This document shows, piece by piece, positions 12,331-60,808 of a stretch of 64,000 nt of DNA. Both the position numbers and the translations under genes were made by a program. The notes beneath the pieces are model-generated. The model saw only the letters and a list, made by a program, of their open reading frames with translations, had not been told where the DNA came from and did not search any database. The stretch spans positions 1 to 64,000 of IMG/VR virus record IMGVR_UViG_3300045125_000071; one strand, 5' to 3'. Positions within the stretch are counted from its first letter, which is position 1; the number at the start of each line of letters is the position of its first letter.

Positions 12331-12825
12331 TTAATTCTTAATATTGTCGATTGAAATTATATATTTTGATATGTTATCAATACCGTCATCTATATTTTTA
12401 AAATAAATCCTTTCTTCTTGCTCATCATAATCCGCCAGTTTGATTAAAAAATCTCTCACAACATTTTCTGGTTCATTTTCTAACCAATCGTATTCCCAAC
12501 TATTTTCATAATTCCACCCTGGCATGTAGGCAAATGGTTTAATTTTATATTTATTAGATAATTTATCCCCATCTAATGTAATTCTATAATCAGTTTTAAC
12601 TTGCCAAGTCGTATTCCTTTTATGAAAATTTTTATTTCTTGTAAAAGAAATATAGTTTAGTTGATGTCCTCTATAAAATTCTTCTGAAGTATTTAATTTA
12701 TTTGTTTTTAAAATGTTTTCTAAACCAGTTTTAGAAGTATAATGGTACAATAATCCGACTTGCTTTGATTCATTCAAAACAATAATCATGGATTTAATTC
12801 TTGATATTTGTTCTTGTAAATTCAT
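12331..12825 (-). CDS. putative ADP-ribosyltransferase-fold protein with an N-terminal pro-peptide
   Basis: MNLQEQISRIKSMIIVLNE leader, then LYHYTS, YISFTR and DEQEERI, in the order expected for ART catalytic motifs. Confidence 0.45.
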   Translation of the reverse strand: MNLQEQISRIKSMIIVLNESKQVGLLYHYTSKTGLENILKTNKLNTSEEFYRGHQLNYISFTRNKNFHKRNTTWQVKTDYRITLDGDKLSNKYKIKPFAYMPGWNYENSWEYDWLENEPENVVRDFLIKLADYDEQEERIYFKNIDDGIDNISKYIISIDNIKN

Positions 12826-12829
12826 AATA

Positions 12830-12836
12830 ATAAATA
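12830..12836 (-). promoter_or_regulatory. TATTTAT late-promoter candidate
   Basis: 4 nt upstream of ATG at 12825. Confidence 0.65.
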
Positions 12837-13628
12837 TTATACCACCATTGATTTATCTTCAATTGGTTTGTAGTGTATAATTTCTATTTTACCATCATCA
12901 TGAATCAATATTGCTGTCATTGATTCGACCCAGTCACCTGAATTTAAATAATGAACATTATCAATAATTCTATCCATTTCTTGGTGAATATGTCCACATA
13001 TTACTCCTTGACATCCATGATATTCGGCCATTTTTGCTGCGGTATTTTCAAAATCATTGACATAGTTTGTGGCGGTCTTTACTTTTTGTTTCAATGGTTT
13101 TGATATTGATTTATATTTAAAACCTCTGAATTTTCTCCATTTATTATATTGCGTATTCATCCATAACGCAATATCATAACCAACACTACCAATTTTTGAT
13201 AACCATTTATATTTTAACATGAAAATATCGATTTCATCGCCATGAAAAACAAAGTATCTTTTATTTTCAAATTTATCTTGGGTAATCCATTTATTAATAT
13301 TTATAACATGATTTTTTACTATTTTTATATTACCCATGTTAAAACCAATGTAGTCATCTAAGAATTCATCATGGTTTCCTCTAACCCATATGACTTCAGT
13401 TGTTTCAGATATTTTCAATAGTTTATTTACAACTTTAGTATGTTTTTTCTTCCATTTTGAACCTCTTTTCAATGCCCATCCATCTATTATATCTCCATTC
13501 AAAATTAAAGTATTACAAGAGGTATTGTCTAAAAATTCTATTATTTCATTTGTCTTTGAATCTCTTGTACCCAAATGTAAATCAGAAATTACAATCATAT
13601 TAACCATTCTATCAGTTTTATAAAACAA
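12837..13628 (-). CDS. metallophosphoesterase of the LpxH2/PlcP (phospholipase C) type
   Basis: All five motifs: ISDLHLG, NGDIIDGW, RGNHDEF, FHGDE, ICGHIH; C-terminal YLNSGDWVESMTA. Confidence 0.85.
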   Translation of the reverse strand: MFYKTDRMVNMIVISDLHLGTRDSKTNEIIEFLDNTSCNTLILNGDIIDGWALKRGSKWKKKHTKVVNKLLKISETTEVIWVRGNHDEFLDDYIGFNMGNIKIVKNHVININKWITQDKFENKRYFVFHGDEIDIFMLKYKWLSKIGSVGYDIALWMNTQYNKWRKFRGFKYKSISKPLKQKVKTATNYVNDFENTAAKMAEYHGCQGVICGHIHQEMDRIIDNVHYLNSGDWVESMTAILIHDDGKIEIIHYKPIEDKSMVV

Positions 13629-13680
13629 ATGGTTAGTAACACCGTACTAACAATTATTAATTCTAAATTTATTTTCCTTT

Positions 13681-14355
13681 TCATGACCAATAATTATGTG
13701 ATTTGTAAAACCAAGATTTATTATTTCTATTAAACCAACTTTTTATGATTAGTACATACATCCACATAACACCTTTTTTATCAAATCGTCTGCCAGATGT
13801 ATATATATACTTTTTAACTAACTTATGTCTATCTTTAAGTATCATCCTACTTAATAACCAATCTTCGGCAACTTTTACGTTTTCGTTAAATTTTCCACAT
13901 TCGATAAATTTTTTTGTTCTCCATAATTGAAATCCACCTATTACAAAAGTCTCTGGTAGTATTTTTTGTAATAAATGAAACCCATTCCATAACCAATCAT
14001 ATTTTTTATCATCACATCGATATATACAAGAAACCAAATCATATTCGTCAATCGATTTTAAACAAGTTTCAATTAACTTTGTATCATATATCATCATATC
14101 CGCATCTAAAAATAAAACGAAAGGGGTTTGACATAAATCAAACCCCTTGTTTCTTGCAATAGATGGCAATCCACCATCGATTATTTTTATATGATTTTTG
14201 TTTTTAACATAATCATGTAATTCAACGTCTTTAATATCTGAAGAATCTGCAATAATTATATCAAAATTTATAGATTGTAATTCTAATAATTTTAAGCATT
14301 TTATAAGTGTATGACCTTCATTTTTTGATGGTATAACAATTGTTAGAATATTCAT
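13681..14355 (-). CDS. family 2 glycosyltransferase (GT-A)
   Basis: IVIPSKNE, IIIADSSD, ARNKG, LFLDADM (DxD), AEDW, TSGRRF. Confidence 0.9.
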   Translation of the reverse strand: MNILTIVIPSKNEGHTLIKCLKLLELQSINFDIIIADSSDIKDVELHDYVKNKNHIKIIDGGLPSIARNKGFDLCQTPFVLFLDADMMIYDTKLIETCLKSIDEYDLVSCIYRCDDKKYDWLWNGFHLLQKILPETFVIGGFQLWRTKKFIECGKFNENVKVAEDWLLSRMILKDRHKLVKKYIYTSGRRFDKKGVMWMYVLIIKSWFNRNNKSWFYKSHNYWS

Positions 14356-14360
14356 CTATT

Positions 14361-14367
14361 ATAAATA
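14361..14367 (-). promoter_or_regulatory. TATTTAT late-promoter candidate for the GT2-phosphoesterase pair
   Basis: 5 nt upstream of ATG at 14355. Confidence 0.65.
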
Positions 14368-14383
14368 TCATATATTTTTTTGT

Positions 14384-17300
14384 TTATATGCGTGTAATTT
14401 CGCAACTTGACCCAGAACAAGCCATTGAACCATATTCTCCAATGTCCTTATATTGTGGTTTATCAAGAATTTCGCCAAAGTTAACTTCCTTGAACTGACG
14501 AGTAACGGTTTCCCACTTGTGGAAAAGATGCACATCCTTCAAGCAATATACCATTTTTCTCATGTCACCCTTAAAGTAATTCTTAGCGAATTTCTTTGCC
14601 CTATCTAACCAATATTTCTTCAATAATACTTGTTCCCTTGTTCCTGTAATTGGTAGAGCATATTCTGTGCCCATATTAATTAAAGTATCACAAGCTAACC
14701 AAAGGTTGTTGTCGAAGTAATGGAGACCATCTACAACCAATCCAGAAGCCAATACAGCGCCTTTTCCATATTCCTCGACAAGTTCTTCGAGGTTAAGTAC
14801 TGAGGTGAATGGTGCTTGGTTAAAATCCTTATCGCCGTAGTCTGACATGAATGATACCGCAGTAAATTCTTCTTTATTATCCCAAATGTAATCTACAATA
14901 ACATCCTTGTCATCAATGATTACAGTGCAACTGGTATTGTGGTTTACAGGATTATATATACATTTTTCTGGATTTGTACCAGCATTAACCCAGTTTTGTT
15001 GGACTAATTTGATAAGTTCAAGGTGTTTAATACCCTTCATATCTTTTTTGAACAACCCTTTTTTAGGGTTCTCAACAGGGACGAATACAACATAATCACT
15101 TTTTGTTTGCGACCAAACACTATCTTCTAATAAGAAGTCCATATTATCAACCAACCATTTAGCAGTATTGGATTCTTTGTTTAATTGCATGACTCTGAAA
15201 TATTTTTCAGAATGTTCTGGATGAATACCAGATGCTGTACCAAGAACTACAGATGCATTACCTGAAGGTTTAACGCAAGTGGTTCTTGCTGCCTGATTAA
15301 TATCAATAACTTCTGCAAGTTCCTTATTTGTTTTCTTAACAATCTCAGCACCTTCTTTAAGAAGTTCGGCGTTGAATAACATCGGATTATTCATCCAACC
15401 AGTTATGCTCACACCAAGCAACGCCTCTCTTGCAAAAATCTTTTCACTAACCTCTCCAAGATATGGGAAACTGTTATATCCCGCCTGAAGTGTACCAAGG
15501 ATTGTCGCGTCTTTACATGCCTTAAAGAATTTCTCTTTTGTTGTACATTTTTCAGCATTAATCTCTGATAGGTTGCATTGTTTAGTTAAAACATTATTAA
15601 ATAACCCTTGATGTTTATATTGTTCTTCAAAACAATATGAATTGTGGAATCCTTCTAATTGTACAATACTATCAATACATTGATATTTACCCTTATATTT
15701 TACTTCACTTGGCTGAAACCTAGTTTTGGTTGACCATAATTCTCCACAATCACTAATTTGAACATACCAAACATCTCTATTTCTTGTTCCAAAGTTTGTT
15801 ACCTCGCCCTTTTTGCTACAAAGATTAACAGTAGAATTTACCCCAATTTTAGTTAATAAAAGTTGTAAATCCCTAATCTTGTTTTCTTCACCATAAATTC
15901 TGGCTTTGTTATTATATGTAATTGTTCCATCGGTATCTATCCAACCAGCAATAAATGCAAGAATTGATTTTTTACTCCAACTAAAAATTTCAGAAGGTAA
16001 ACCATCTTCATATTTTAATTTATGAGATAGTTCCTTATCTAACTTATTAAAAGTAACATTATAATATTCTGTTTCAATTCCATTATAAGATTCTTTTAAT
16101 TTTTTACCAATTGTACCATCAACAAAAGGATATTCATTAGAAAAATTACTTTCATAGACAGAAGCAAAGGGGGTTCTGTATTTATCACCTATCTTAGGAC
16201 AAGTACCATCGCCTAAAACAAAACCATAATCATAAGCATAAATTTCATCGTGACCAAAATCAAAATCATTTACATTACTTCTTGGTACTTGAAGTTTATA
16301 TTTGGTAGTTTTTAGCAATTCAATTAAATCTTTTGTCTCGATTTCTTTAAATTGTTTTTCAAATCTATTTTTAACTAACCATTTATGGTTTTCAGTACAA
16401 TCCAAATATGAACCATCATTTAATTTTACCCTAAAAAGTTTTCTATTTGTACCAGTAAGAATAGGTTTGACTTTTGACCAATTTTCTCCATTCCAAATTT
16501 CAACCTCCCTATTTTCATCAACTACCTTACCAATCATTTCAATTCCATCCTTAGTAATTAATTTTGTTTCATATGAAACACACCCTTGGATACCAAACTT
16601 ATGTTTGTTCACACTCACATAATGCTCAACATCTTCATAGTCGATTTTTGAGAAATCAACCTCATCGAGTATTGGTAATTTCAATATTTCAAAACATGGG
16701 TTGAACATATCAAACCAAGAATTTGCGAATACAAAACCAATATCGTTTGCACCATCGTTTAGTTTAACAAGATAATCAAACTGGTCTTTAGTCACTTTAC
16801 CCCTTAACAAGAGAACCGAATTGTTCGACCTTGCTCTTTGTGGATTTTCTTCTCTCCAATTACCCGTTTTAGCATGAATCATTTCGGTATCATTTGGGTC
16901 AACAATCATATTTAATGCTGACCTTCTAACCCCGCCAGACAATACCGCATCAGATGCATGACAAATGATGTCAAATGCCAAGATTGGCCTGATTTTATTT
17001 CCTTCCTTATCAATCCACCTTTCGATTAATTGTTCGATTTTTTCAAGGGATTGTTTAAGTCCATCGGGACCAGGAGCCTTGAATCCGCCACTAATGAATG
17101 TACCCTTTTCTCTAACTTGTGAATAATCAAATTTAACCTCATATCCTGCATATTCAGGGAATGGTTGGTTGTCAACAAAATATGATGACAAAAGAACGCC
17201 GAGTGAGTCCGCCCAACCTTCAATAGAGTCAGGTACAACAAATGTCTTAGCACCTAAAACCCTTTTCTGAATACGACTAAGATTATTAACAAATGGGATT

Positions 17301-17656
17301 AACAATCCGCCACCAACACCGCAACCAGATAAACCAAGATAAAATATTTCTTGGAATACTCTATTCCTCATTATGTGTGTACTAGTACAGTTATACATCC
17401 TTGTGTTATGTCTCAAAATTTCAGTATGTCTATACTGCAAATTTCTTTGAGATGCTAACACAACCTGGTCTTCCATACTTTCAAGAGCAGATTGTAGATA
17501 TTCTTCAATCTGATAATTAGAGTATTTTTGCCTATGACCATTTATAATGTCTGCACAAGCCTCTTTCCAATTTTCGTACCTTCCAATTTCATCCCTCCAT
17601 TTGAAGTAATCGGAATACAATTTTAAGTCGCTAAGAAATTTCTTACCTTTTTGCAT
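14384..17656 (-). CDS. nrdJ: class II (B12-dependent, monomeric RTPR-type) ribonucleotide reductase with intein
   Basis: YNCT, GGVRRSA, NPCFEI (radical Cys), CNLSEIN, TTCVKPSGNAS, C-terminal ACSGSSCEI; intact 1090-aa ORF. Confidence 0.93.
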   Translation of the reverse strand: MQKGKKFLSDLKLYSDYFKWRDEIGRYENWKEACADIINGHRQKYSNYQIEEYLQSALESMEDQVVLASQRNLQYRHTEILRHNTRMYNCTSTHIMRNRVFQEIFYLGLSGCGVGGGLLIPFVNNLSRIQKRVLGAKTFVVPDSIEGWADSLGVLLSSYFVDNQPFPEYAGYEVKFDYSQVREKGTFISGGFKAPGPDGLKQSLEKIEQLIERWIDKEGNKIRPILAFDIICHASDAVLSGGVRRSALNMIVDPNDTEMIHAKTGNWREENPQRARSNNSVLLLRGKVTKDQFDYLVKLNDGANDIGFVFANSWFDMFNPCFEILKLPILDEVDFSKIDYEDVEHYVSVNKHKFGIQGCVSYETKLITKDGIEMIGKVVDENREVEIWNGENWSKVKPILTGTNRKLFRVKLNDGSYLDCTENHKWLVKNRFEKQFKEIETKDLIELLKTTKYKLQVPRSNVNDFDFGHDEIYAYDYGFVLGDGTCPKIGDKYRTPFASVYESNFSNEYPFVDGTIGKKLKESYNGIETEYYNVTFNKLDKELSHKLKYEDGLPSEIFSWSKKSILAFIAGWIDTDGTITYNNKARIYGEENKIRDLQLLLTKIGVNSTVNLCSKKGEVTNFGTRNRDVWYVQISDCGELWSTKTRFQPSEVKYKGKYQCIDSIVQLEGFHNSYCFEEQYKHQGLFNNVLTKQCNLSEINAEKCTTKEKFFKACKDATILGTLQAGYNSFPYLGEVSEKIFAREALLGVSITGWMNNPMLFNAELLKEGAEIVKKTNKELAEVIDINQAARTTCVKPSGNASVVLGTASGIHPEHSEKYFRVMQLNKESNTAKWLVDNMDFLLEDSVWSQTKSDYVVFVPVENPKKGLFKKDMKGIKHLELIKLVQQNWVNAGTNPEKCIYNPVNHNTSCTVIIDDKDVIVDYIWDNKEEFTAVSFMSDYGDKDFNQAPFTSVLNLEELVEEYGKGAVLASGLVVDGLHYFDNNLWLACDTLINMGTEYALPITGTREQVLLKKYWLDRAKKFAKNYFKGDMRKMVYCLKDVHLFHKWETVTRQFKEVNFGEILDKPQYKDIGEYGSMACSGSSCEITRI
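15578..16582 (-). mobile_element. 335-aa intein with LAGLIDADG endonuclease, ending in Gln
   Basis: GIQG|CVSYETKLIT...CTENHKW...YGFVLGDG...FIAGWIDTDG...YCFEEQYKHQGLFNNVLTKQ|CNL; removal leaves a 755-aa RNR. Confidence 0.92.
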
Positions 17657-17677
17657 TTTTTAGTTTTATTTATTTAT

Positions 17678-19045
17678 TTATTTATTATTTAATTCCTGTC
17701 TTTTAAGAAAGGCTTTCTTTGCCAATTCTTGTTTGTTTTGAACTTGTTGGTTTTCAAAACCAAGTAGTGTATTTTGTGATTCGGTATCTATATCGAGATA
17801 TTCGTTATTAAATTTACAGTTTTGGAATATGATACCATCTTTTCCTACTCTTGATTTAACTAAAGTCATTGTTGCTAAGTTGTGTTCCTTTTGTTCTAGT
17901 GTTTTACCAAGCGATAATATGACATGCGCTATTTGTGCTTTTTTGATTGAACCACCCATTTGGTCTGTACTAACAACTTCAGATGATATTGACTCTCTAT
18001 TGCCTTGGGTTGCTGTCCATATAGCAATTTCGAATTCATCTGTCATCGCCTCAAGTCTTCTCATTATTGAACCCTCACCCTTCCATTCATCACCATTGAT
18101 TGATTTTTCTGGTGCAATACAATCAACATAATCAAGAACAAGTAGGTCTATATTAAAACCATCCGAAATCATTTTTCTGATTTTTGACTTGATTTCAGAA
18201 ATAGATACATCACTACTAGCCAATTTCAATAATTTCAATTGACCAGATGATTGACTCTGTTTTTCTCTTGCAACACTTAAAACCTCTTCTTTATTTTCTG
18301 GCTGGTCATCAGGTGCTACACCACTCCAAATAGTGTAGTGTTTTCTTTTGATATCCCCTGGATTATCTTCAAAAAATATTTGAAGAACATTGTAACCACA
18401 GTTAAATGCTGTATTTGCCATTTTTGTAAGCAAGGTTGTTTTACCAGTACCTGTAGGTGCAAGTACAACCCCCAATTCACCTCTTCCTAAACCACCTTTA
18501 AGCAGATTATCAACCCCAACAATACCTGTCGGTATTGGGTGTCTATAGTCCTTCTGGAGAGCATCTTCCATGTTTTCAAACACATCAGATATCTCATCTT
18601 CTTCAAGACCAACTTGTAAAGCATCATTAAATAAACCTTCAAGTTTTTTGTATTGCTCAAAATCACCACCTTCAATGATTTTTTCCGCAATTTTTATAAC
18701 CCGTTTGAGATTTTGTTGTTTACAGAAATTCATCGCGGTTTCCTGAACATAATCAGGGTTACCATTTAAACCTTTTAATATTTCTAAGGTATCTAAATGG
18801 ATTTTGATGCCGAATCTCCGTTTTCGTTAATAAGTTTTTGTGCTAATGTCACATAATCAGGAATTCTTTCAAATTGAGAATAGAATTCCTTTATATTTTC
18901 CATTATAAATCTAAAGGAAGCATTTTCAAAATACTTACTTTCGATTAACTCGATTATTTGCTCAGCATATTTCCTATCTTCAATGATAGTCTTGATTAAT
19001 GTTTTGTTGAAAATCAAAACCAAGATATCCAAAGTTCTTTTCCAT
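17678..19045 (-). CDS. dnaB: replicative helicase, DnaB / T4 gp41-like (frameshifted)
   Basis: APTGTGKT Walker A, LLVLDYVD Walker B, IWTATQGNR, KSRVG; N-terminal part in 18793-19045. Confidence 0.9.
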
Positions 19046-19049
19046 CTTA

Positions 19050-19506
19050 TCAATTTAATTGTAAATCATGCCCCAAATAATTTGTCTCCAAATCTTTAGA
19101 AGACAGTGTATCTGTCAATGCAGACAACATGTCTTTAAGTTTTGGACGAATATCTACCGTATATCTAACCTTAGGATGATAGAAGTATGCGGGAAATATT
19201 CTTGAAATAAATACGTTGTCATCTTGTTTAATTTCAAGTAAAAAATATTCTTCTTTTTCATCATTTAACATGTTCCACATCTTCATAAGATAACAAAAAA
19301 TTTTGATTTTCACATAAAAAATCGGAACTTTTTATTTTCAAATCTTCTGAAATTTCTTCACAAATATTTTTTACTCTTTCATGAAGATTGATAGAACGCT
19401 TTGATTTTGGATTATGATTTTTTACATTAAAAAATCTTTGACAAATAATATTGCCTTCTAGCGTCAATACAAACTCAAATTTTGTCACATCTTGTTGATT
19501 ACTCAT
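19050..19506 (-). CDS. hypothetical protein of the replication block (two fragments, one indel)
   Basis: ORFs 19261-19506 and 19050-19313 overlap and read as one ~150-aa protein. Confidence 0.6.
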
Positions 19507-20522
19507 GATTTCTAATTTTAATGTTTCTCTTATTTTTTTCTTTTCTGGTTAATCTTAAAAACGGATTTAAAAAATTAACCCAGGCATCGTCTGATTTAGG
19601 TAGGACATTAAATAAACCATCTTCCATCATCATTTTCATGGTATTCTTATATGACCTACCATCTGGGTCTAATTCTTCATTTATTAATGACAATATGTCA
19701 GCTTTAGCCTCTTCAGTTAAGAATGGTTTTTCTAAACTTACAATAGTCTCGTTTACAATGAAAAATTCATCACCTAAAACACCTTCTTTTGTTACGCCAG
19801 TTAGAAGGTTTGCGATTGTTTTATTGTTTTTATCTTGTTCAAAAATGTTGTTTGACTTCTCAATAACTTCCAATACCGAAAGTTTTTTTGTTTTTATTTC
19901 AGGGAAAAACGTTATCATTTTTTGATACCCAAACCCCTTATTCCGTAAATGTTGTCAGACTTGTCACCACATATGATTTTCGCAATTTTTAAGGTTATCA
20001 ACTAAGATTTCTTCTTTGTCATAGGTGATTAGCTCACCATTTTTGATAATTCTACCCTTTGAAGGATTGTACAATATGTACCTTATCAGAAATAAGTTGA
20101 GCCAAATCACCATCGGAAGAATATATTATTACTTCTTCGTTTTTGACATTTTGTGTGTAAAAAGCAATGGAATCGTCTGTTTCACAATATTGGAACTCGC
20201 CTTGTCTAACATAAAGTTCTTCCAAGTATTGTTTTACCCTGGTTCTTTGATAATTGTATGAACTGATTTCTTCCTCTGTTCTTAATCGTCTTGCGTCCTA
20301 TTGACTTTATACTGATGGTATATTTTCTTTCTTGTCATTTGACAATCTTCACCATCCCAAAAAACAACGACTTTATCTAAATCGATATGTTTCAATCGCT
20401 CTTCGGATAGTATTAAGAAAATGAAAAATTGCTCCAATGTGTTTTCCCTTATAAAAATGGTTTTTGAGACCATAGAAACCAATCGTAAGTAAATTGTCAC
20501 CATCAATTAATAAAACAGACAT
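19499..20522 (-). CDS. 5'-3' exonuclease / flap endonuclease (PolI 5'-nuclease, T4 RNase H-like)
   Basis: MSVLLIDGDNL, VVVFWDG, YHQYK..R, GDKSDNIYGIRGLGIK helix-hairpin-helix; frameshifted. Confidence 0.85.
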
Positions 20523-20546
20523 TAATTATTATTACAGAGTTAAAAA

Positions 20547-21534: not shown

Positions 21535-21564
21535 ATATTAATTTTATTAAATTTTAGAGAAAAG

Positions 21565-22941: not shown

Positions 22942-23546
22942 CTTGATATGTTTCTGGGTTAAAGGTATCTCTTATGGTATCTTTTGAATAATTTTCAACA
23001 TCATTTTTGTTAAAACGTATTCATTTTTACCTGTTTGTCTCATTTCGTCATGTTTATTAGCAAAAATTGTTGTGGATTTTGATTAAAAGGATATGAATCC
23101 AAAGACCTCATTTCTAATTTTTCCTCAGGTGTTTTTGGTCTGACATTATCGATTTTTGTGCTTAACATATCAATTTTTGCCATAACATTATCCATAGCTG
23201 CGAGTTTTTGTTCCAAATCATTTAATTTGGTAAAAACATCATCCATTTTGGTTATTACACCTGAATTATCCCCCTTACTCGCATCCAATTCTTTTTTTAT
23301 ACTTTTAGTCATATTAACTAAATCTGTAATATCAACCTCCTCAACTTCATTTTCTGGCATTGCTGGTACATCACCACCAGGAGCTGGTACATCACCTTCT
23401 GTGGGTGGTGGAACATCTCCACCAGGTAATGGGGGTACATCACCTTCAGCAGGTGGTGGGGGTATTTCTTGCTCTGATATAATATATTTGTACTTATAAA
23501 TTTGATTAAACCTATTTAATTCTTCCTGTAATTTTTTCTTATTCAT
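22925..23546 (-). CDS. putative head-associated/scaffold-like protein with Pro-rich GDVP repeats and coiled coil
   Basis: Starts MNKKKLQEELNRF; four GDVP repeats; coiled coil LNDLEQKLAAMD; one indel near the C-terminus. Confidence 0.55.
23358..23462 (-). repeat. four tandem (E/G)GDVP Pro-rich coding repeats
   Basis: AEGDVPPLPGGDVPPPTEGDVPAPGGDVPAMP. Confidence 0.8.
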
Positions 23547-38988: not shown

Positions 38989-41877
38989 CTATACCGTTAT
39001 ATTATATATTTTCAAAACGATGCTCCAGTTGGATGTGATAATGAATTCAACATCTATGAATTCTAGCGCACGAGTGGGTTTAATATAAATCTTACCCCTC
39101 AATGTGTTAGCATCAATATCCTCTGGGTCATTTGATACTGTTACTCTGAAATCTGTTAAACCTCTTTCCTTTTTAATTGATTCAAGAATTGGGTTAACTA
39201 ATCTCAAGAATTCATTTCTAACTTGTTCATCATTTTGTTCGAACAACAATCTAACCGCAACTGCTGAAATGAGTTTTCTTGCTCTAAGTAACAATCTTCT
39301 AACATTCATTCTATCCAATGCTGATTCTTTAACTTGAAGTGTTTTATTACCCCAAATAATCGTACCAGTATCAGAGAATGTTGCAATTGGGTTAATTCTT
39401 GCTTGATAAAGGTCATCTCTTTCGTCAAGTGTAAGTTTCTTGTACGCTTTAACAGAATTAACAAGACCTCTTGAATAACCAGCAACAGAGAACCAAGGAT
39501 ATGCAACATTATCAGTCAATGCTATGTTTCTAACAACTTCACAAGTAGGTGGAACATATAAATTAGTACCACTATCAGCATCTTTTACTTGTATCCATGG
39601 CCAATATGTTGCAGAATAGTTTGAATCCAAATCAGCAGCTTCTAATTCAGCAATTACAACATCAGCTGATTCTGAATTTCTAGTGTTGATTATGTATAAA
39701 GAATCCGCTCTATCTGTTTCAACCATATCGATAGCTTGTTGTGTTAAAGATGTATGGTCATAAAAGTTAATACCTGGTGTTGCGAAAACATTGATATCAA
39801 CCGCTTCTGGGTTTGCAAATGTTTGAATACCAGTTAAATAAGCGTAGTAATCGGAATTACCAACTGTTGAACTGAATACACCACTTGTTGCAACGGCAGT
39901 TGATTGGTTTGCAGTATATGTGTTTTTACCAAAAATGTATGCATCATCGTATGTTCTAACATTTCTATAGATATCCCAACCATCAAAACCACCAGAACAA
40001 GCAAATGTGAATTTTCTATTTCCAATCGGTGCTAAAAGACCTTTTGATGTACCTTCCAAATCATAAGGTGTTGTTTCGAATTCATAACCTGTTGGGGTAT
40101 TTCCAGTAAATCCAGATGCGTTTACTGACAAATGGAAACCAGGAGTTACACCTGTTACTGACGCAGAACCTTTATAAGTAAATAAGTCATTATCAAATGA
40201 AAAACCAGCTTGAGTGGATAAACCAAGAGAAACTTTCTTAATTTTATCACCATTTGAAATAACTGCTGTACCGTCTGATTCATATCTAACAACGTCACCA
40301 GCACTTAAATAACTTTTCTTATATACAACTCCACCGAGTGTTTTAGCACCAAATGTATCATTAACACTAAATCCTCTGAAACCACTAGGTACAGCATCCG
40401 TTGGGTGATTATCGGCATAGACTAATCATGATATATTTAGAAACCAATGGATAATCACCATTTGATGTACCGATTTTTTTGCGATAAATCCTGGAACATC
40501 TGGATTCATAGAACATCTAGCATATCTTTCTATTACAACCATGTTATCGTCTGTATCATTAAAATCACGAACAATTACATCGAATTCCATTTTTCTAAAT
40601 CGATATTTTGAATCATGACCTTAACTTCAGTGTTTGAAGAATTACCATCTGATACAGTAACAACACGGAATAAATCAACCACTTTATTACCTCTAACTTC
40701 TGATACAACATATGGTGATTGTGCTGTTCTCCATTCTGAGACAAATTCACTTGCATCAAGATTTGTTGTTACAGTGGTACTTAAACCTCTTATATGACCT
40801 TGGTCATATAAATTTTTAACCAAATTGCTATAATTTTTCATGTACGTAAAGTGGAAAATCAGAATAATCTCTATCATAAACGTCACTACCTAAAACTTTA
40901 GAAATGAATTTGGTAGATGATGAATCTAATGAACAATTAAATGTTTTTTCACCACCAGTATATCCAGTAACATTTATAACAAACTCACCAAGAGCATTAG
41001 AATCTAAATTATCAACTTCTGATATTGTAACACTAGTTGCACCAGTAACTTCTCTAATCAAGGTTTGTCCATCATAATGTCCTCTTGACCTTAAAGCCAT
41101 AACAATTAAATCTTCATAATTTTCATTAACATATGCACCATATGAGTATCTTGTTACGTTAAAAGTCGAACCCGTTGTATACACAAATAAGTAAGCATAT
41201 ACACTTGTTAAACCTGATGAATATAATTTGTTATACCATTCTTTTCCATTAGTATTTTCATCATTATATAATCCAGTTAATGGTGAAACTAATTCAGTAC
41301 CAGTTAAGCTAGTTGTTCCTGATGATGGTACTTTTCCTAATACAAACCATTTATCAGCATCTGTTGTACCAGTAAAACCTGAAAAATTTGCAACTAAATA
41401 ATCAGTGATTGTTTCACCATCTATTGCAAGTTTATCAGATAATTCAGTATAAAATGTACTACCTGTTATAGATGATTCTGATGTCGCATCTAATGTTCCA
41501 GATGTTGTTGTTGGTGTTGTACCAGTAACAACTAAACCACCTAAAGTTGATAAACCATAAGTTCTATATGGTTTATAACCAGTTAATCCTAATACTCTTG
41601 TTATAAACAATTGATTAGATTCTTGCAAATATGATTTTGCAACATATGGTAATTCATATTTTGGATTACCATTACCATCTTTTAAAACGGAAGTGCCTCC
41701 GAAATAAGTCCTAAAGTCATCATAATTTGTTACTAAAACTGGTTCAAATGCTGGTCCTTTTAAGGTTTCACCAACAAGACCCAATGTTGTAACACCCACA
41801 CTCTGAGCTACAAACGTCAAATCTTTTTCCGATGTGTACACACCAGGTGATACAAATACTCTGTTAGAAGTTGCCAT
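38989..41877 (-). CDS. contractile tail sheath protein (T4 gp18-like; frameshifted)
   Basis: MATSNRVFVSPGVYTSEKDL, GLVGETLKGPAFEP, FATPG, YWPW, PWFSVAG..RG, WGNKTLQ, NVRRLL, IYIKPTRALEFI. Confidence 0.95.
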
Positions 41878-51534: not shown

Positions 51535-51580
51535 GTAGATTTGGATATTATAAATAAATATTGTTAAAAAGTAAATTGTT

Positions 51581-51718: not shown

Positions 51719-51719
51719 G

Positions 51720-52649: not shown

Positions 52650-52665
52650 GTTAAATTTTATAAAA

Positions 52666-52710
52666 ATAAATATCTTAATAATTTTTATACTATACTTAAA
52701 AGATATTTAT
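52666..52710. promoter_or_regulatory. divergent pair of TATTTAT motifs
   Basis: ATAAATATCTT at 52666 and AAGATATTTAT ending at 52710 form an 11-bp inverted repeat between divergent genes. Confidence 0.65.
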
Positions 52711-52733
52711 TAATGACAAAAAAATAATATAAC

Positions 52734-52925
52734 ATGGAAAACGGAAAATTATTTAGTTTTATTGGTTCTTTTATTAGTCATGGCTATTGCCATCGGAATC
52801 TTCTTTATGTTAATGGAAAAGGAAATGCCCCAGTCAAATAGGGAATTATTAATTGCCTTTGTTCTGTATTATTCGGTGCAATGGCCACATCAATTAAAAA
52901 AATAACTGGAGACAATGAAAAGTAA
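52734..52925 (+). CDS. small two-TM membrane protein, holin candidate (two indels)
   Basis: Reconstructed FIGSFLLVMAIAIGIFFML-MEKEMPQSNRE-LLIAFVSVLFGAMATSIKK. Confidence 0.45.
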
Positions 52926-53223
52926 GGAATTTATCATTATGACTATTGCATCCCTATTATTATTAGGGTTTGTAGTGTATATGTTTAATTATTCATTCAA
53001 AATGACAAAAACAGGATTAATTCGTCAAGATTTACAAAACGATAGTGTCTTGATGATACAAAACAATCAATTAAAATCATCAGATTCTTTGTTAAATGTT
53101 AATGATGACCAATTAAATATCAAATTGGACAACCATGAAACAAGATTAAGAAAATTGGAAACCAGAAAACCAATTGTTAGAAAAGACACCGTGTTTTTAG
53201 TCGGTGAACAAATTGGGGAATAA
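52915..53223 (+). CDS. N-terminally anchored coiled-coil membrane protein, spanin-like candidate
   Basis: TM FIIMTIASLLLLGFVVYMF, then coiled coil LDNHETRLRKLE; overlaps the preceding gene. Confidence 0.45.
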   Translation: MKSKEFIIMTIASLLLLGFVVYMFNYSFKMTKTGLIRQDLQNDSVLMIQNNQLKSSDSLLNVNDDQLNIKLDNHETRLRKLETRKPIVRKDTVFLVGEQIGE

Positions 53224-53252
53224 TCTATATTAGGTTATTCCCCATTTATTTT
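53214..53252. terminator. terminator at the convergent junction
   Basis: TGGGGAATAA...TTATTCCCCA 10-bp stem, T-rich tail on the + strand. Confidence 0.7.
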
Positions 53253-54154
53253 TTAAGTAAGTTTCTGTATTTGTTATTTCAGTATTTGTTAATGCTTTTG
53301 TATAAAGTAATAATTCACCAATATAACCATCTAAATCTTCTGTTGCATCTGCGGTTTCACCTATGTAGAATACAGATGTATCAGAACTTGTTTGTTCCAC
53401 TTGGATTTTGTGAAAATGTCAATGTTCTATCTACACCATCAATTCTAAATTTCAACCTATTACTTATTTCCTGTTTGTGTCCCATCAAATACTGCGGTAA
53501 ATACATGAAACACTGTTGTTATTGTAACACCACTTGTTTTCCCAAACCTTGGCCCATACCAATTTGATAATCACCGCTTCTTATTGATAACCAATTTGCG
53601 TTTCTTTGTGCATTATTAGTACCTAATTGAGTCAAGGTATTTGTTGCAGATGCGTTGTTAAATCTACCCACAATAATCATGGTTGCACCTGTCAATGATT
53701 GGAAATTTGTTATTGGATTAATGGTAAACAAATCATTATCACCATCGAAATAAGCAACATCTTTCCCATTTTGAAAACTTGTTACCTGTTTTGGTCTTTT
53801 ACCACCAGTTGAGTTAGCTGGTTTAACAGTACCCGTAGATTTGTCATTTACAGAGTTAATATCTGTACCTGTCCCTAATGTAATGGTTGTGTTGTCAGAA
53901 AAATCATACCAAACTTCCAAAGTTGGGTCATTAGCAACAGGTGGTGGTATTGTACTTGTTGATGGTGTAATTGTTGGAGTCACTGTATTGGTCGGTGTAA
54001 CACTTTGTGTTGGAGTCACTGTATTGGTCGGTGTTGGAGTAGGAGTGTTAGTCGGAGTATTGGTAGGTGTTGCAGTAGGTGATATCACCTGGTTTGGTTT
54101 TCTTTTTCCAAATCTATTACTGCTACCCCTAAATGATGATATTCTATTTATCAT
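53230..54154 (-). CDS. LamG/concanavalin-A-like lectin domain protein with Thr-Pro linker (tail fibre/adhesin)
   Basis: LEVWYDFSD..TIT, YFDGDNDL, and after a frameshift YIGELLLYTKALTNTEI..TETYLKNKW. Confidence 0.7.
53955..54085 (-). repeat. Thr-Pro coding repeat
   Basis: SPTATPTNTPTNTPTPTPTNTVTPTQSVTPTNTVTPTITPST; TGGAGTCACTGTATTGGTCGGTGT occurs twice. Confidence 0.85.
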
Positions 54155-57100
54155 GACCCAAATGATGATAAGGAACCTAAAACATCCCAAGTTGAACCAA
54201 CTCTAAATGCTGTAAGACCAATTATTTCTGTTTTATTTGCACTACCAGATGGTACAATACTATCGGCCCATTTAATCGTCACATTGCTTGAATTAAATTG
54301 ATATGCCGATGCACTATATGGAGTAACACCTTGTGTAACAACAAACGTCATCGTTAATGCTTTATTATTTGTTGTTGGAACATTTGTTATGTTCCATGTT
54401 CCATTACCAGTCAATCCTGTAAGATAAAATATTGAACCACTTGTATAATCAAATGTATTTCCACTGAACCCGCCACTGACCGCTAAATTCTCACTAACTC
54501 CCCCTTATATCCAATGAACCAGTTATTGTTAGCCCATTTGTATAGTTGCCAGAACCACTAACATCTAAAGAATAGATTGGTAAAGGTTGATTTATACCTA
54601 TTCTACCATTAGCTGAGCCCAAAAATGGTGATAATGAAGATGTTTCAAAATACGAACCAGTACCAAATATTAAACCACCCAAGTTAATACTATCTTTTCT
54701 TCCGTTTTCAAGTGATATATTTGTACCAATAATTATATTATTAGAATTAACACCTGTATTATCGGGTGATTTACCAACTTGGTATCCTATAAAAGTAGAA
54801 AAAGAAGCACTTCTTGCATATTGACCAGTATGATATCCTATAAAATTTGAATACGATGCGCTATATGCCGATTCACCAGCATATTCACCAATTAAAACAG
54901 AATATTTTCCATGTTCAGAATCTAAACCAGCACGACTACCTATAAAAATACTTCCAGTCACAGACCTTACACTATACCCAGCGTATGTTCCAATAAATAC
55001 AGATTCAAACGCACTTGCATATTCTCCAGCATTATTTCCTATAAACGTAGAAAAACTTGAACTCAAAGATTCTCTACCAGAAGCATAACCAACAAAAACC
55101 GAAACTCTTGAATTTCTTGTTCTCCATCCAGATTGGTATCCAATAAATGTATTTATATCTGATACTCCTTGTATTTCCATACCCGCTTCTCTTCCTATAT
55201 ATTGTGAAAGATAACTATTTGATGAACTATACCCAGCGTTTTGTCCAATAAAAATTGAACTATTATTGTTTACTAAAGATGTGTTATATGTGTACAATGA
55301 ACTTCCTGTTACTGCAAATGGATATGATGAACTAACTGCATTATTTGCCCAACTTGATGTTCCTTGTAATGAACCTGTAAAATTAGTTGCCTCAATAGAA
55401 CCTGTAACTGTTAATCCATTTGTATAGTTACCAGAACCACTGACATCTAAAGAATAGATTGGTAAAGGTTGATTTATACCTATTCTACCATTAGCGGAAC
55501 CAGAAAAAGGATTACCTGTTGTTGTTGCATATGACCCAGTACCGAATATTAAACCGCCTAAATTAATACTATCTTTTCTATCATTTTCAAGAGTGATATT
55601 AGTACCAATTATTGTGTTATTGCTTCCTATACCATTACTACTAACTCTAGCACCAACGTTATAACCAATCAATATTAAATCTCTCTTTAATGTTACTGAT
55701 ACGCCATTTATTCCAACACCAGCACCATTTCCTATTATATTTGAATGTATAACATTGGTAGTTTTAGCACCAGCAGAAAGACCTATCATTGTGTTCGGGC
55801 CCTTATCATCCATAACTGAACCAGACCCTGCATTTGTACCTATTAAAATAGTATTTTGTAATCCTTGAGAATATATTCCCGCATTAGTTCCTATTGCAAT
55901 AATATTAGTAGAAGGTGATGAATTTTGACCCGCTGAAGTACCTATTAAAATAGCATCATTTGTAGTACTACCTAAATTAGAACCCGCTTGATAACCTATT
56001 ATATTAGAATTAGATAATGCTCTAGTTTGATACCCCGCTTGATAACCAAAAATATTACTATTTTGTACAGTAAAGAATTGATTTGCTCGTCCAGCATCCA
56101 CACCAACTACAATATTGTTTGTTGTTACACTTGTATCTGATGGTGTTTTTGGTATCCATGAATTTAATGAATATATTGCGCTTCCTGTTACTGCAAATGG
56201 ATATGATGAACTAACTGCATTATTTGCCCAACTTGATGTTCCTTGTAATGAACCTGTAAAACTATTAGCAACAACAGAACCAGTGACTATCTGATTACCA
56301 TTAAATTGATTTGAACCTGTCGTTACTAAATTTGTAGGGATTCCTGTAAATGCGGTTGTTTGTATTGTTGAATCTGGAAATGATATTGTTCCTTCAGGAT
56401 TAAACGACCAAAGATAATTATTTGATACAATATTGATTTGTGGATTTTCACCACTTGGTATACTAACATTACTATTTTCGCCACCCAAATATAAAGAGGC
56501 ACTTGAATTATCTTGAACACCACCAGCCCTTATATGGATATGATTTGGATATGTCGGGTCAATTATCAAATATTGGTCATATTCAGTGTCTTTTCTGGTT
56601 TCAATTCAATTGTTGTAAAACCATTACCATCACCCGAACTATTTGGAACAAAACGTAAACTACCTGAACCACCAATAATATCATTCGGAATAGTTAATGA
56701 ACCAGACCTATCAAAAGTAAAAGTATGACTACCTGAAAACCAATTTGTTCCAATGTATGCAGCCGTATCATCAACCCACATATATTGATTTGAATCACTA
56801 CTTTGTAACTCAGCCCATCCACCTTCAGCAGCTTTTAAATCAATACTACCAGAATTACCACTATCATTTGCGATTATTTGTGCACCACCATCAAAAGTGA
56901 TAGACCCCGTAACAACAATATCTGATTCTCCATTTATTATTAAAGAACCTGTTATTTTAACGGAACCTGTAAAGTTGTGGGTATCATCAAATGAATTACC
57001 GAATTGAGTCGAACCACTTATTGTTTCTATAACAATATTTGATACGGATGAACTTAAAATATATTGTTGTGCGGTTAATGAACCGCTTATAATCAAATCT

Positions 57101-57276
57101 CCATTTATTGTTTGACTACCTGTAAACATATGTGAACCACTATTTACCAATACTTGTCTTAAATGATTTAATGTGTGTTGAAATGTAACACCAGAATAAA
57201 CTACGGTTGTCACACCACTTAAAGGTAAATTAGATAACGAACCGCTTGTTAATTCTGTAATTTTCTTTGTTGCCAT
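54151..57276 (-). CDS. long tail fibre/adhesin (~1040 aa) with two Gly-rich repeat cassettes
   Basis: ORFs 56566-57276, 54494-56569 and 54151-54414 joined across indels; ~14-aa N.(F/I)IG..AG repeats typical of trimeric adhesin/fibre beta-rolls. Confidence 0.7.
54539..56261. repeat. tandem ~880-bp cassette duplication inside the fibre gene
   Basis: Identical 81 bp at 55302-55382 and 56181-56261 (offset 879); identical 53 bp at 54561-54613 and 55443-55495 (offset 882); interiors divergent. Confidence 0.9.
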
Positions 57277-57280
57277 TTAC

Positions 57281-57287
57281 ATAAATA
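57281..57287 (-). promoter_or_regulatory. TATTTAT late-promoter candidate
   Basis: 4 nt upstream of fibre ATG at 57276. Confidence 0.65.
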
Positions 57288-57288
57288 T

Positions 57289-58389
57289 TTAATATACTAA
57301 TATGTTATTATCTTCTGTTAATATTATTTCATCTAATTCTGTCATTATTGCAAATTCTGAAAATTGCATTATTATGTTTATACACTCATCTTGACATTCA
57401 TTCACATTATAATATGGAATAATTTCTGTTTTGTAATAATGTTTTATATTTGGATAACCTAATGGTTCTTCAAAATATTTTATTTGTTTTAAATTAAACT
57501 CAGTTGTTCCAGTATGAATATTTGTAGAACCAGATGTACCGCCACCCCATATTTGTACAATATTATTATCAGAACCCCTAACAGAAGGAACAACTTCTTC
57601 CCAATCTTTTACTTTATATATTAATCTACCATTTAGGTATATCTTTAAAGTACCTAATCTATAATCTCTTTCGGATAACCAATTTTTGTTTAATGTTTCG
57701 ATTATTGTATATTCTTCAGTGGCCCCTGTAATTACATCAATTGGATTTGTAACCGTCCATCCCGTTATATAATCGTTTGAACCGCCTCTATTTAAAATGT
57801 CACAATTATCCAAATAATTGTTTCGTTTAAAAACTATTGTAATATCAAAATCATTTGATGTACCACCACTACATAAAACATTTGTTTGTCCAGAAGCAAT
57901 ATAATTCAATTCCGTATATCCTGATGTTGTTTCACAATATCCCGAAATGTGATAAGATTCCCATTTAATTCTACCATCATCAGTAAAACTGAACGAAAGG
58001 TTATTATCTAAATAAAATCTTTCGTTTGTTTCATTTTCAATACCCCAGTAATAAAATGTACTACCACTTGTCCAGGGTAACGTTTCTCTATTGAAAACAA
58101 AATCTAAAGTCCACCCATATTCTGTTCTTTTTCTAATTGTAAAATCACAAGTATTTCCCGTATAAGGCTCTGTAATATTTATAGACCATGGTTTAATACT
58201 ATCTAATGTTACATCTAAACAAGAAGAATCTATTGTTAACCCAGTATAAGTAATTTGATTGTTAAAATCTAAAACATCTGTATCAAAATCAATTTCTGAC
58301 GTACCAAATTCATAATCATAGAATTGAGATGAATCTAATCTTAATTTTAGTCTTTGACCCCAGTATCTTAAAATATTTTGACTATTCAT
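57289..58389 (-). CDS. virion protein, possible lectin-like fold
   Basis: Intact 366-aa ORF; GWTLDFVF, GTLKIYLNG, LKQIKYFEEPL; late motif upstream. Confidence 0.55.
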   Translation of the reverse strand: MNSQNILRYWGQRLKLRLDSSQFYDYEFGTSEIDFDTDVLDFNNQITYTGLTIDSSCLDVTLDSIKPWSINITEPYTGNTCDFTIRKRTEYGWTLDFVFNRETLPWTSGSTFYYWGIENETNERFYLDNNLSFSFTDDGRIKWESYHISGYCETTSGYTELNYIASGQTNVLCSGGTSNDFDITIVFKRNNYLDNCDILNRGGSNDYITGWTVTNPIDVITGATEEYTIIETLNKNWLSERDYRLGTLKIYLNGRLIYKVKDWEEVVPSVRGSDNNIVQIWGGGTSGSTNIHTGTTEFNLKQIKYFEEPLGYPNIKHYYKTEIIPYYNVNECQDECINIIMQFSEFAIMTELDEIILTEDNNILVY

Positions 58390-58395
58390 GTATTA

Positions 58396-58426
58396 ATAAA
58401 TATCTTTCATAACATTTGATATTTAT
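58396..58426. promoter_or_regulatory. divergent pair of TATTTAT motifs
   Basis: ATAAATATC (58396) and GATATTTAT (ending 58426) inverted between divergent ATGs at 58389 and 58442. Confidence 0.65.
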
Positions 58427-58441
58427 ATAAAAAACGATTTG

Positions 58442-59221
58442 ATGAATAATTTTATAAAACAAGTTATAGAAGAAAAATTCGCATCAAAAGCACAACAGAG
58501 GTATTTTTATGCACAAGCTGGAAAAGGTGGTAAAAAGGGTAAAAAATGGGCTAAATGGGCAAAAGAATTTTCTGATGATACCGATTTTGAAAAAATACCC
58601 GAAAAAGTAGAGGAAGAAGAGATTGATGAAATTGTTGATGAGAAAGGTAATATTATGAGAAAAAATACCATTATCATTAAAGAAAAGCGGAATAACGCAA
58701 AAAGACATAACAGATAGAGTAGTGAAAACTGGCGCAGCATCTATGGGTACTCACGGTGTACACGGTACACACACATCATTGAGATATTGGGCCGAAAATA
58801 GACAAGAATTAAAAAAACTTATTGAAAATACAATTGATGAAATAGAAATGGATGATGCTCTTGGATATGATGAAACATTAGGTAAAGACGCTTCTTATGA
58901 TGAGGCGTACAAATATTTTAGAAAAATTTAAATTTATCTGATGAAGAAACTATAGAAAGACTAAAAAATTTAGGATATGATGAAAAATTAAAAGGTAATA
59001 AAGTTAGATTGATTGAAAACCCTAAAAAATTTATTGAAGAATTTATTGAAAGTATATTATCTAGAAAAAATTCAGATTATGAACTGGTAAATTCGTCAAA
59101 TAAAGAAATTAAAGAAATTAACCCAATTATAAAAAGACAATTAAAATCATTTAAAGAAACGTTAGAAAATAATAATTTATCTATAGAAGATGTTTTAGAA
59201 TATTTAAAAAACAATGAATAG
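58442..59221 (+). CDS. acidic/basic hypothetical protein, possible head-internal protein (three fragments)
   Basis: ORFs 58439-58717, 58722-58931 and 59009-59221 are collinear; FASKAQQRYFYA basic motif. Confidence 0.55.
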
Positions 59222-59711
59222 CCAATTAAAAAATAGAATTTTTGATATACCAAAAAATGTTTTAGATTTAATAAATCATACTGTATCAGGTTTAAGCGGG
59301 AAAAGAACATCAGGTATTCAAAGAGCTGAAAAACTTTTATCAGATAAAAAAGTAAATTATGGTCAATTAAAAAGAATTATCCACGATTTACAAAATATGG
59401 ATAAAAATAACCAATTGACAAAATATAATTTAGCTGGTGGTGATACTATGTTAAATTGGGGAAGTAAATTTTTAGATGGTGAAAGAAATTTAATAAGTAA
59501 TAAAAAAGATTCTAAAAAAAGAGCTGATGAAATTTCTGGGTTGTCTGGTGAAAGAAAAAATACACATATAAAAAAACATAAAAAAAGATTTGATTTTAAT
59601 GTAAAACCAAATTTAATAAAAAATTCTTCACATAAATCATCAATAAAGCCAATAATGTCTTTAGGTTTATTTGAAGAAATAAATAAAATAAAAAAATTAA
59701 TACTATACTAA
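59214..59711 (+). CDS. basic hypothetical protein with C-terminal LFEEINKIKKLI motif
   Basis: Intact 165-aa ORF. Confidence 0.65.
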   Translation: MNSQLKNRIFDIPKNVLDLINHTVSGLSGKRTSGIQRAEKLLSDKKVNYGQLKRIIHDLQNMDKNNQLTKYNLAGGDTMLNWGSKFLDGERNLISNKKDSKKRADEISGLSGERKNTHIKKHKKRFDFNVKPNLIKNSSHKSSIKPIMSLGLFEEINKIKKLILY

Positions 59712-59712
59712 T

Positions 59713-60087
59713 ATGACAGAGTTAGAAAAATTAGCGAATCAATATCGCATAGAACATTTGGCGAGAAATGCTTATGACTATAATGACCTTTATAGCTCAA
59801 CAAATAAAAACGCATTATCTGATGGTGATGATAAAGGTAAAGGAGATAACAATGGTAGCGTTGGTTCAAGCGTAGATATTCAAACAAGAATTGAAACTAT
59901 GGCAAAAAATCAATATAAGTCTGAAAATGAATATTCATCAAATAATAAAAATGCTCTTTCAGATGGGGATGAGAAAGGTAAGGGTGATAATAACGGTAAT
60001 GTGGGTGGTTTAACAGATATAAAAACAAGGGTCGAATCGGTTGTGAGAAACAAATACGGCGAAAATAACAAGTATCCTAATTTTTAA
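59713..60087 (+). CDS. hypothetical protein with two and a partial ~47-aa repeats
   Basis: YSSTNKNALSDGDDKGKGDNNGSVG / YSSNNKNALSDGDEKGKGDNNGNVG. Confidence 0.7.
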   Translation: MTELEKLANQYRIEHLARNAYDYNDLYSSTNKNALSDGDDKGKGDNNGSVGSSVDIQTRIETMAKNQYKSENEYSSNNKNALSDGDEKGKGDNNGNVGGLTDIKTRVESVVRNKYGENNKYPNF

Positions 60088-60089
60088 CA

Positions 60090-60808
60090 ATGAATGATAG
60101 TATTCTTTTTCAAATACTGGTTGAACAAAATATTCTTAAAACAACGCAAACTAAACCAATAGTAAATGCTATTAAGAATAAAAGAAAAATCACCTTTGAT
60201 TATTATGGGCCAAGAAAACCAAAAAAGATAGTGTAAGACCTGGAAGAAGAATAAAAGCGGAACCGTATGCTATTGGTTTAAGTAAAAAAGGTAAATTAAT
60301 TATTAGAATGTGGGTTGAACCACCATCAATCTCAAAAAAGGTTTTGCAAAAACCAACTGGAGAACATTTATGGGTGTTAGAATGAGAAATGTTGTAATAA
60401 CAGATGAAACATTTACAGGCGATAGACCAGGTTATAAACAAGGAAATGATAATTCAATGACTGTTACTTATGTTAGTTTAGATAAATCTACACAACCAAA
60501 ACCAGTTAAACAAAAGACACCAATAGAGAAGAAACCCGAAATTAAAAAACCAGTAAAATTACCTACAGCGACAAAACCACCAGTAACAGTTAAAGAACCC
60601 GAAAAATTACCACAACCTAAACCAGAAAAAAACCAGAAGAAATTAAAAAAGAACCTGAGGTTGAAAAACCTGAAGATTTAACTAATAAAGAAAGGAACTA
60701 CCACAACCAAAACCAGAAGATAAACCATCAGATGATGTTTTAGATAATAATTTGAAAGAAGAATTAATAAGAATGAAAGCTTTAATGTTTTCACAAAAAT
60801 TCATATAA
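60090..60808 (+). CDS. stand-alone WYL-domain protein with Pro/Lys-rich tail (frameshifted)
   Basis: NAIKNKRKITFDYYG...R.IKAEPYAIG...GKLIIRMW...WRTF...RMRNVVITDETF. Confidence 0.7.

Follow-up and report, generated by a model that had tools for sequence, protein, structure and literature searches.

In herpesviruses, HK97 and P22, a C-terminal peptide (the protease/scaffold tail, the protease tail and the scaffold helix-turn-helix, respectively) brings the scaffold or the protease inside an HK97-fold shell, and in herpesviruses this capsid-binding tail is shared by both proteins and clipped by the protease. Such tails are shared through overlapping genes or a single gene, and are not known to be borrowed by unrelated cargo or to occur at N-termini. 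In bacteriophage T4 a short leader, the capsid targeting sequence (CTS), is carried by IPI, IPII, IPIII and Alt and ends with (L/I)xE (PMC9026906; PMC5694885), and the gp21 protease cleaves after L/I-x-E (PMC9026906). Alt is an ADP-ribosyltransferase (ART) that has a propeptide at each end and is both packed and injected (PMC9026906), and the C-terminal propeptides of gp21 and Alt, as well as the long propeptides of phiKZ and SPN3US, are cut by a gp21-type protease and were proposed to target proteins to the prohead (PMC9026906; PMC5694885). Outside phages, encapsulin cargo-loading peptides of ~10 residues stand mostly at the C-terminus and sometimes at the N-terminus, on a flexible linker rich in Pro/Ala/Gly, and dock inside an HK97-fold shell (PMC8229669). 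The DNA analyzed here, positions 1 to 64,000 of the IMG/VR record IMGVR_UViG_3300045125_000071 (further termed the window), encodes several otherwise unrelated proteins that begin or end with a short helical peptide, the tag, of the consensus NLQExIxRIKx(L/M)M. The tag is most likely an address label that loads its cargo into the prohead, since its core is common to the phage's own scaffold and protease tails; from the sequences compared, we give this reading a probability of roughly 0.6.

The tag is invariant in orthologues and is confined almost entirely to protein termini. When a profile made from the four window peptides in which the tag had been noticed was run on the genome and its relatives, 27 hits of at least 12 bits were found in 1.05 million six-frame residues, with none in each of five shuffles, and every hit listed singly sits at a protein terminus. 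A 13-row tag profile (A5), applied to two near-complete relatives (287 and 311 kb), gave 12 hits that were all terminal, nine of them right after the start methionine, three one or two residues before the stop and none internal. A position-blind DNA pattern for LQExIxRIKxLM, run across IMG/VR, matched 38 times, and 35 of these matches are terminal (25 C-terminal and 10 N-terminal); the three that are not lie in short frames without a methionine (two) or, in a frame of 707 codons, 74 residues before its end (one). At least 119 stretches were retrieved by the pattern of methionine followed by NLQExIxRIK, and the first 80 loci, which were analyzed, contain 73 distinct complete open reading frames (ORFs) of 105-321 amino acids in 35 families. 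These families, at least 35 in number, have no detectable similarity to each other outside the N-terminal tag. The tag helix is amphipathic, with hydrophobic residues at i, i+4, i+7 and i+11, and in AF2/AlphaFold models of P0001 and P0003, two tagged proteins of the window, it stands as a separate helix joined to the folded part through low-confidence residues (helix 3-16 and linker 17-24 in P0001; helix 152-163 after a disordered basic stretch 89-150 in P0003). The proposal of the first-pass annotation, that the peptide is portable, helical and used at either terminus, is borne out by the scans and the models together. A literature search with the tag strings returned irrelevant matches only.

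The core of the tag recurs at the ends of two proteins of the head module. The gene in the scaffold position (~400-490 amino acids) ends with AYENPQF-x-R(M/I)K(D/E)(L/M)M and four further residues in 80 of 80 related loci, and the S77 protease, encoded just upstream of it, ends with (D/N)(R/K)MK-x-LM and then a short helix in the 58 loci caught; the source contig (G000) itself has both tails, in shifted frames. One core, (R/K)(I/M)K-x-(L/M/V)(M/I), is common to all five classes of scaffold tails, protease tails and cargo tags, with RMKKLM identical in protease tails, the WYL family and the P0003 family, and RIKEMM identical in scaffold tails and N-terminal tags. Scored with a profile built from cargo peptides alone, the scaffold tails have a median of 6.2 bits and the protease tails one of 7.4 bits, a level which only 0.5% of internal 25-residue segments of G000 reach, although these numbers are a guide and not a test because the match was noticed post hoc.

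The residues that adjoin the core resemble sites of a T4-type prohead protease. In the capsid protein of the clade LINE↓A is invariant at residue 60 (the arrow marks the cleavage-type junction), and since it matches the LTE↓A at residue 65 of its T4 counterpart gp23, a similar protease specificity is likely. Cargo and core are separated in C-terminal carriers by the LxE with which the tag opens, G(L/I/V)-x-x-E comes after the core in N-terminal ones, and (L/I/V)xE-type sites precede the scaffold and protease tails too. An [LIVM]xE within residues 13-30 is present in 70 of the 73 tagged ORFs, where composition predicts roughly a quarter, and (I/L)xE is not enriched at N-termini in general. The additional (I/L)xE sites that had been pointed out in the genes at 58.4-61.4 kb turned out not to be enriched (1.68 vs 1.28 genome-wide per 100 amino acids, p = 0.18).

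The homologues of P0001 show what else may stand in the place of the tag. In 111 of the 117 that can be aligned, the leader ends with [LIVMF]xE, which is followed by A, G or S and then by the conserved KQVG-x-LYHYTS. The leader of P0001 itself has 19 residues and ends LNE↓S, and this 19-residue tag leader is found in the closest relatives of the window protein and in one distant homologue. The commonest leader of the family is a 10-residue one of the MIKLxDLLxE type, and others include MKSFKEFITE, which matches the MKTYQEFIAE↓A of T4 IPII/IPIII (T4 record) at 6 of 10 residues, and similar sequences; all leader types end xE↓A/G/S. These variants imply that the tag occupies the slot that a T4-type capsid targeting sequence holds in relatives.

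How do the four window peptides fare in the light of these comparisons? All are present (12784-12819(-), 23496-23531(-), 59667-59702(+) and 60752-60787(+)), and the claim that they form one terminal peptide on unrelated proteins stands for P0001, P0003 and a WYL-domain gene, three genuine members, and is doubtful for the copy near 23546. That peptide comes after the ATG at 23546 of the gene for P0002; by a profile built without it the window copy scores 7-8 bits, and it is counted as doubtful because the P0002 orthologues (n = 80) keep a different N-terminal helix and reach a median of -0.5 bits. The peptide at 60752-60787 is there as described, but in a 39-codon stop-to-stop frame without a start. 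A three-frame reading against an intact orthologue (L004) makes 60090-60808 one gene with at least four A-run frameshifts, and by sequence comparison the region is identified as a frameshifted orthologue of the WYL-family gene. Leave-one-out profiles within G000 rank each peptide 3rd to 7th among ~3,900 frames, which is not decisive; in the window alone the similarity is within chance, whereas in the comparative data it is beyond chance. A DNA-level repeat behind the four peptides was considered and rejected, their DNA being no more alike than the peptides require. As for P0002 itself, a conserved helix at its N-terminus is followed by a hypervariable Pro-rich linker and, at the C-terminus, by a coiled-coil region, and the protein has at least 256 relatives in IMG/VR. 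Coordinates of the features are collected in Table 1.

Table 1. Tagged genes, upstream elements and head-module genes of contig G000; positions refer to the window unless marked G000.
Feature	Position	Strand	Remarks
Window	first 64 kb of one 251,358-bp viral contig (G000)		IMG/VR type record
P0001 gene	12331-12825	-
P0001 N-terminal tag	12769..12825	-	residues 1-19: Met, NLQEQISRIKSMI, IVLNE (LxE site at end)
P0001 cargo domain	12331..12768	-	modelled ADP-ribosyltransferase fold
P0002 gene	23040-23546	-
P0002 N-terminal helix, doubtful member	23466..23546	-	tag-like; Pro-rich linker after
P0003 gene	59214-59711	+	conserved basic 165-aa protein
P0003 body	59214..59666	+	conserved helical domain residues 1-88 and basic disordered tether
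P0003 C-terminal tag	59667..59708	+	LFEEINKIKKLILY, then stop codon
Broken WYL-domain gene, body	60090..60751	+	WYL domain, then Pro/Glu/Lys-rich linker; three frames
Broken WYL-domain gene, C-terminal tag	60752..60805	+	LKEELIRMKALM and six residues, then stop codon
ATATTTAT element	12830..12837	-	12 nt upstream of P0001 start
ATATTTAT element	58419-58426	+	ahead of operon with both C-terminal carriers (first gene 58439)
Gp23-type major capsid protein	G000 79.1-80.9 kb		outside window; Gp23 scores 215-255 bits
Putative scaffold, acidic gene	G000, between capsid and protease genes		as gene 22 in T4
Peptidase_S77 (T4 gp21-type) prohead protease	G000 ~82.1-82.9 kb		outside window; S77 scores 63-80 bits
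Ribosomal protein bS21 gene	G000 83456-83596	+	outside window; adjoins head module, opposite strand

The cargo domain of P0001 is predicted to have an ADP-ribosyltransferase fold: with VIA-align the model gives Z scores of 8.9 to Tpt1, 8.7 to KptA and 7.4 to Scabin and DarT, with almost all of the top 50 being ART-fold chains, the top Foldseek hits are ART-fold with a probability of 0.98, and in Pfam there is a weak match to Tox-ART-HYD1. Residues H28, Y27, Y29, E135, E137 and E138, candidates for catalytic residues of the H-Y-E type, are invariant or near-invariant in the family. P0003 has ~300 metagenomic homologues of 163-166 amino acids, and all 120 homologues among those listed keep LFE(E/Q)-x-x-(K/R)IKKL(I/M) at the extreme C-terminus; fold and family searches with P0003 gave no match. 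In 14 related loci an intact WYL-family gene, coding for 235-315 amino acids, lies just downstream of the P0003 homologue; the linker of this family is hypervariable and Pro/Glu/Lys-rich, and its end carries L(Q/K/N)E-x-(I/L)-x-(R/K)(I/M)K-x-LM, with one to four residues left before the stop in these loci and one to six in the intact orthologues overall. The intact orthologue L004 matches Pfam WYL at 31.7 bits (cut-off 21.8), and the window copy gives only a fragment hit. Most of the other cargo families are without a family match, the hints being a P-loop kinase-like protein, a ParB_N-like protein and a weak ART-PolyVal match, and no recognizable tail or replication proteins with the tag were seen in the cargo sample examined. 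By analogy, these cargo types (an ART fold, as in T4 Alt, together with ParB_N-like, kinase-like and WYL proteins) would fit injected proteins. In the operon that holds both C-terminal carriers, the first gene (58439-58717(+)) gives a weak match to a phage clamp-loader A subunit (E = 4e-4, below cut-off).

The suggestion of the first-pass annotation that the peptide is a head-targeting helix like the T4 CTS is upheld insofar as a portable helix, used at either end, has four indirect links to the head: the core common to scaffold and protease, the adjoining protease-type sites, the T4-CTS-like leader in the slot of the homologues, and the presence of a T4-type protease and capsid. It is weakened in its examples, one of which is doubtful and one of which lies in a frameshifted gene. 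We rate the tag as a variant of the T4 capsid targeting sequence, the new points being that it would work at either end and on many more families. What the comparisons show is the sequence pattern with its terminal position, conservation and portability, the core in common with the scaffold and protease tails, and the head genes; docking, cleavage, packaging and injection are the steps that we infer. The tag consists of an amphipathic helix, usually with LxE before the core, a flexible linker to the cargo and an (L/I/V)xE between core and cargo. Within the head under assembly the core would dock to a single receptor, which may be the scaffold core or else the Gp23-type capsid protein, at its inner face or its propeptide, so that proteins with the tag at a free end may co-assemble into the prohead. 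The gp21-type protease would then cleave the (L/I/V)xE site, separating cargo and tag, and the cargo would remain with the DNA and probably be injected. A broader proposal, to which we lean slightly less than to its opposite, is that a widespread uncultured clade of freshwater jumbo T4-like phages may use an either-end loading code, copied from the scaffold/protease tail, to pack dozens of unrelated effector families (ART-fold, WYL, ParB-like and kinase-like) for injection.

Several observations weigh against a head address label. The likeness between cargo tag and scaffold or protease tails spans only six to eight residues and was seen post hoc, T4 gp22 has no such tail, and the scaffold itself is identified by synteny and acidic composition only, a family search having given no hit. 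The glutamate before the conserved KQVG of the P0001 family could belong to the fold and not to a cleavage site. One cargo has a peptidoglycan-binding domain and is not obviously capsid-internal. The same domain, together with the fact that the cargo is mostly without assigned function, would suit a docking peptide for a hub other than the capsid (a chaperone, a protease adaptor, the replication or transcription machinery, or a host protein), the likeness to scaffold and protease being then coincidental; strict terminal position and portability are expected of any short linear docking motif. We regard such a hub as unlikely, though as a possibility to be taken seriously, for it leaves unexplained why the same core ends both prohead core proteins in every locus, why 70 of 73 ORFs have a protease-type site between tag and cargo, and why a T4-CTS-like leader fills the slot in P0001 homologues. 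A helix that merely self-associates, oligomerizing its carriers as a coiled coil with no targeting role, would account for the amphipathic pattern and for the free helix in the models; yet twelve residues are short for a stable coiled coil, and the finding that 35 unrelated families bear nearly the same sequence points to a single shared partner, so we hold this to be improbable. Should the helix bundle with the scaffold tail, this would itself be head targeting by another route.

The last point against the address label concerns the DNA of the tag. Over 103 distinct copies, codons 2, 3, 6 and 7 of the N-terminal tag have odd synonymous usage, being AAC in 74% (24% in gene bodies), CTA in 44% (7%), AAC in 68% (24%) and ATA in 93% (41%), respectively, which suggests that the copies of the module descend from common DNA or that the start of the mRNA is under a further constraint. 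Could selection then act on the nucleic acid, through a translation-start context for bS21-carrying ribosomes or a homology patch for cassette exchange? The departure at these codons, the frequent tandem arrangement of tagged genes and the bS21 encoded by the phage would agree with it, but the same peptide is also found at the 3' ends of genes, most tag codons follow background synonymous usage, and the four window copies have no DNA identity beyond that imposed by the peptide; only a slim chance is left to this explanation. The slimmest belongs to a fortuitous likeness of Lys/Ile/Glu/Leu-rich helices in an AT-rich genome, of which the leave-one-out ranks within the single genome and the chance-like P0002 example are reminiscent. 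Against it stand the 27 hits vs none per shuffle, the confinement to termini and the invariance of the tag in orthologues next to hypervariable linkers, and chance is excluded for three of the four peptides.

The contig has a CheckV completeness of 75% and 31% G+C, and its window genes include a tail sheath, a baseplate J-like protein, a DnaB-type helicase and a class II ribonucleotide reductase with an intein (14384-17656(-); 1,090 amino acids, with a LAGLIDADG domain in the intein and a B12-dependent ribonucleotide reductase insertion domain). Judged by its genes (Gp23-type capsid, gp21-type S77 protease and bS21), G000 matches an uncultured T4-like jumbo myophage of the freshwater Bacteroidetes phage group. 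Ribosomal protein bS21 is a hallmark of freshwater jumbo myophages predicted to infect Bacteroidetes (PMC9723584), and the bS21 gene beside the head module places the phage in that group. A megablast search of the tail region against cultured phages gave no match, the closest cultured proteases are at most 44% identical, and no close cultured relative or host system turned up. Frameshifts at A-runs split the tail sheath, scaffold, protease and WYL genes (window 38989-41877(-) and 60090-60808(+); G000 80.87-82.9 kb(-)). Since several essential genes are broken at A-runs, the assembly appears to carry homopolymer indel errors rather than pseudogenes. The genetic code of the contig is standard; an alternative code was rejected as the cause of the broken ORFs, because dropping any single stop codon rescues none, which means that the breaks are frameshifts and not in-frame stops.

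The carriers had also been placed near late motifs, and this did not hold for the T4 late promoter TATAAATA, which occurs at chance (20 found vs 19.9 expected) and was not found on the right strand upstream of any carrier. A second element, ATATTTAT, lies just upstream of scaffold and sheath genes in addition to the positions given in Table 1. In the genome, 28 of its 81 copies fall 8-60 nt upstream of the start of a same-strand ORF, while such intervals make up 4.9% of positions, and in reverse orientation it is far less enriched; its role may be that of a late promoter or of a start-site element. Its window copies are at 10466, 12830, 14361, 41915, 51437, 57281 and 58396 (all on the minus strand) and at 58419 on the plus strand, with more elsewhere in G000. 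It is read on the coding strand, often only 12 nt from the ATG, and carriers and structural genes are among the ORFs it precedes.

Some further observations concern the arrangement of leaders. Genes with the N-terminal tag often stand in tandem, two or three together and 0.5-0.8 kb apart (loci L192-L271), and one relative (G001) has six tagged genes within 9 kb at 129-138 kb; such arrays are reminiscent of T-even phages with their variable internal-protein loci. Another leader that recurs at N-termini consists of methionine, five or six residues and (I/L)(L/T)(T/K)E(S/T)(E/Q)L-x-x-II-x-x-II. It was seen at G000 150327(+), 151069(+), 150279(-) and 79104(-) and at L060 6249-7172, in five of five cases directly after the start methionine, and it may be another leader class, similar helices heading some P0001 homologues. 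Downstream of the capsid gene, the ORF at G000 78174-78446 starts with a sequence that weakly resembles the tag, and the synteny of this ORF is lost in relatives.

The first weapons of a phage to arrive in the host are the proteins packed together with its DNA, and finding them is difficult unless virion proteomics is at hand. If the proposed role of the tag is true, candidate injected proteins of uncultured jumbo phages could be listed from sequence only, and the whole injected set would become readable. It would also hint at how the prohead core recognizes its components, a question that awaits an answer even for T4 gp21, and T4-type capsids could be loaded with foreign proteins by means of a second, orthogonal tag.

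How does the tag compare with the described systems? With the encapsulin cargo-loading peptides it shares a terminal peptide on a flexible linker, as in the modelled helix and disordered tether and in the Pro/Glu/Lys-rich linkers of the WYL family. It differs from them in its consensus and in its shell, which here is the phage Gp23 capsid protein; encapsulin peptides, moreover, are kept without proteolytic removal, and encapsulins are cellular compartments. The likeness to the capsid-binding tails of scaffolds and proteases is that one core, (R/K)MKxLM, ends 80 scaffold and 58 protease tails here. The tail of T4 gp21 ends AEAMKKAL, near the RMKKLM of the protease of this clade, whereas the propeptides of T4 gp21 and Alt and of phiKZ and SPN3US have no defined common portable sequence, and those of the giant phages exceed 100 residues. 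The closest likeness is to the T4 capsid targeting sequence, likewise a short leader that stands on unrelated proteins, in a phage that has a gp21-type protease, and ends with (L/I)xE. In both cases the carriers are small and fast-evolving with an ADP-ribosyltransferase among them (PMC9026906; PMC5694885), so that the ART fold of P0001 recalls T4 Alt, and a CTS-like leader holds the same slot in P0001 homologues. The tag differs from the T4 leader in a sequence unrelated to MKTYQEFIAE, in its length (19 vs 10 residues), in being also C-terminal (25 of the 38 position-blind matches and the whole P0003 family), in its presence on 35 or more families as against four T4 proteins, and in a core that recurs in the tails of scaffold and protease, a feature that T4 gp22 lacks.

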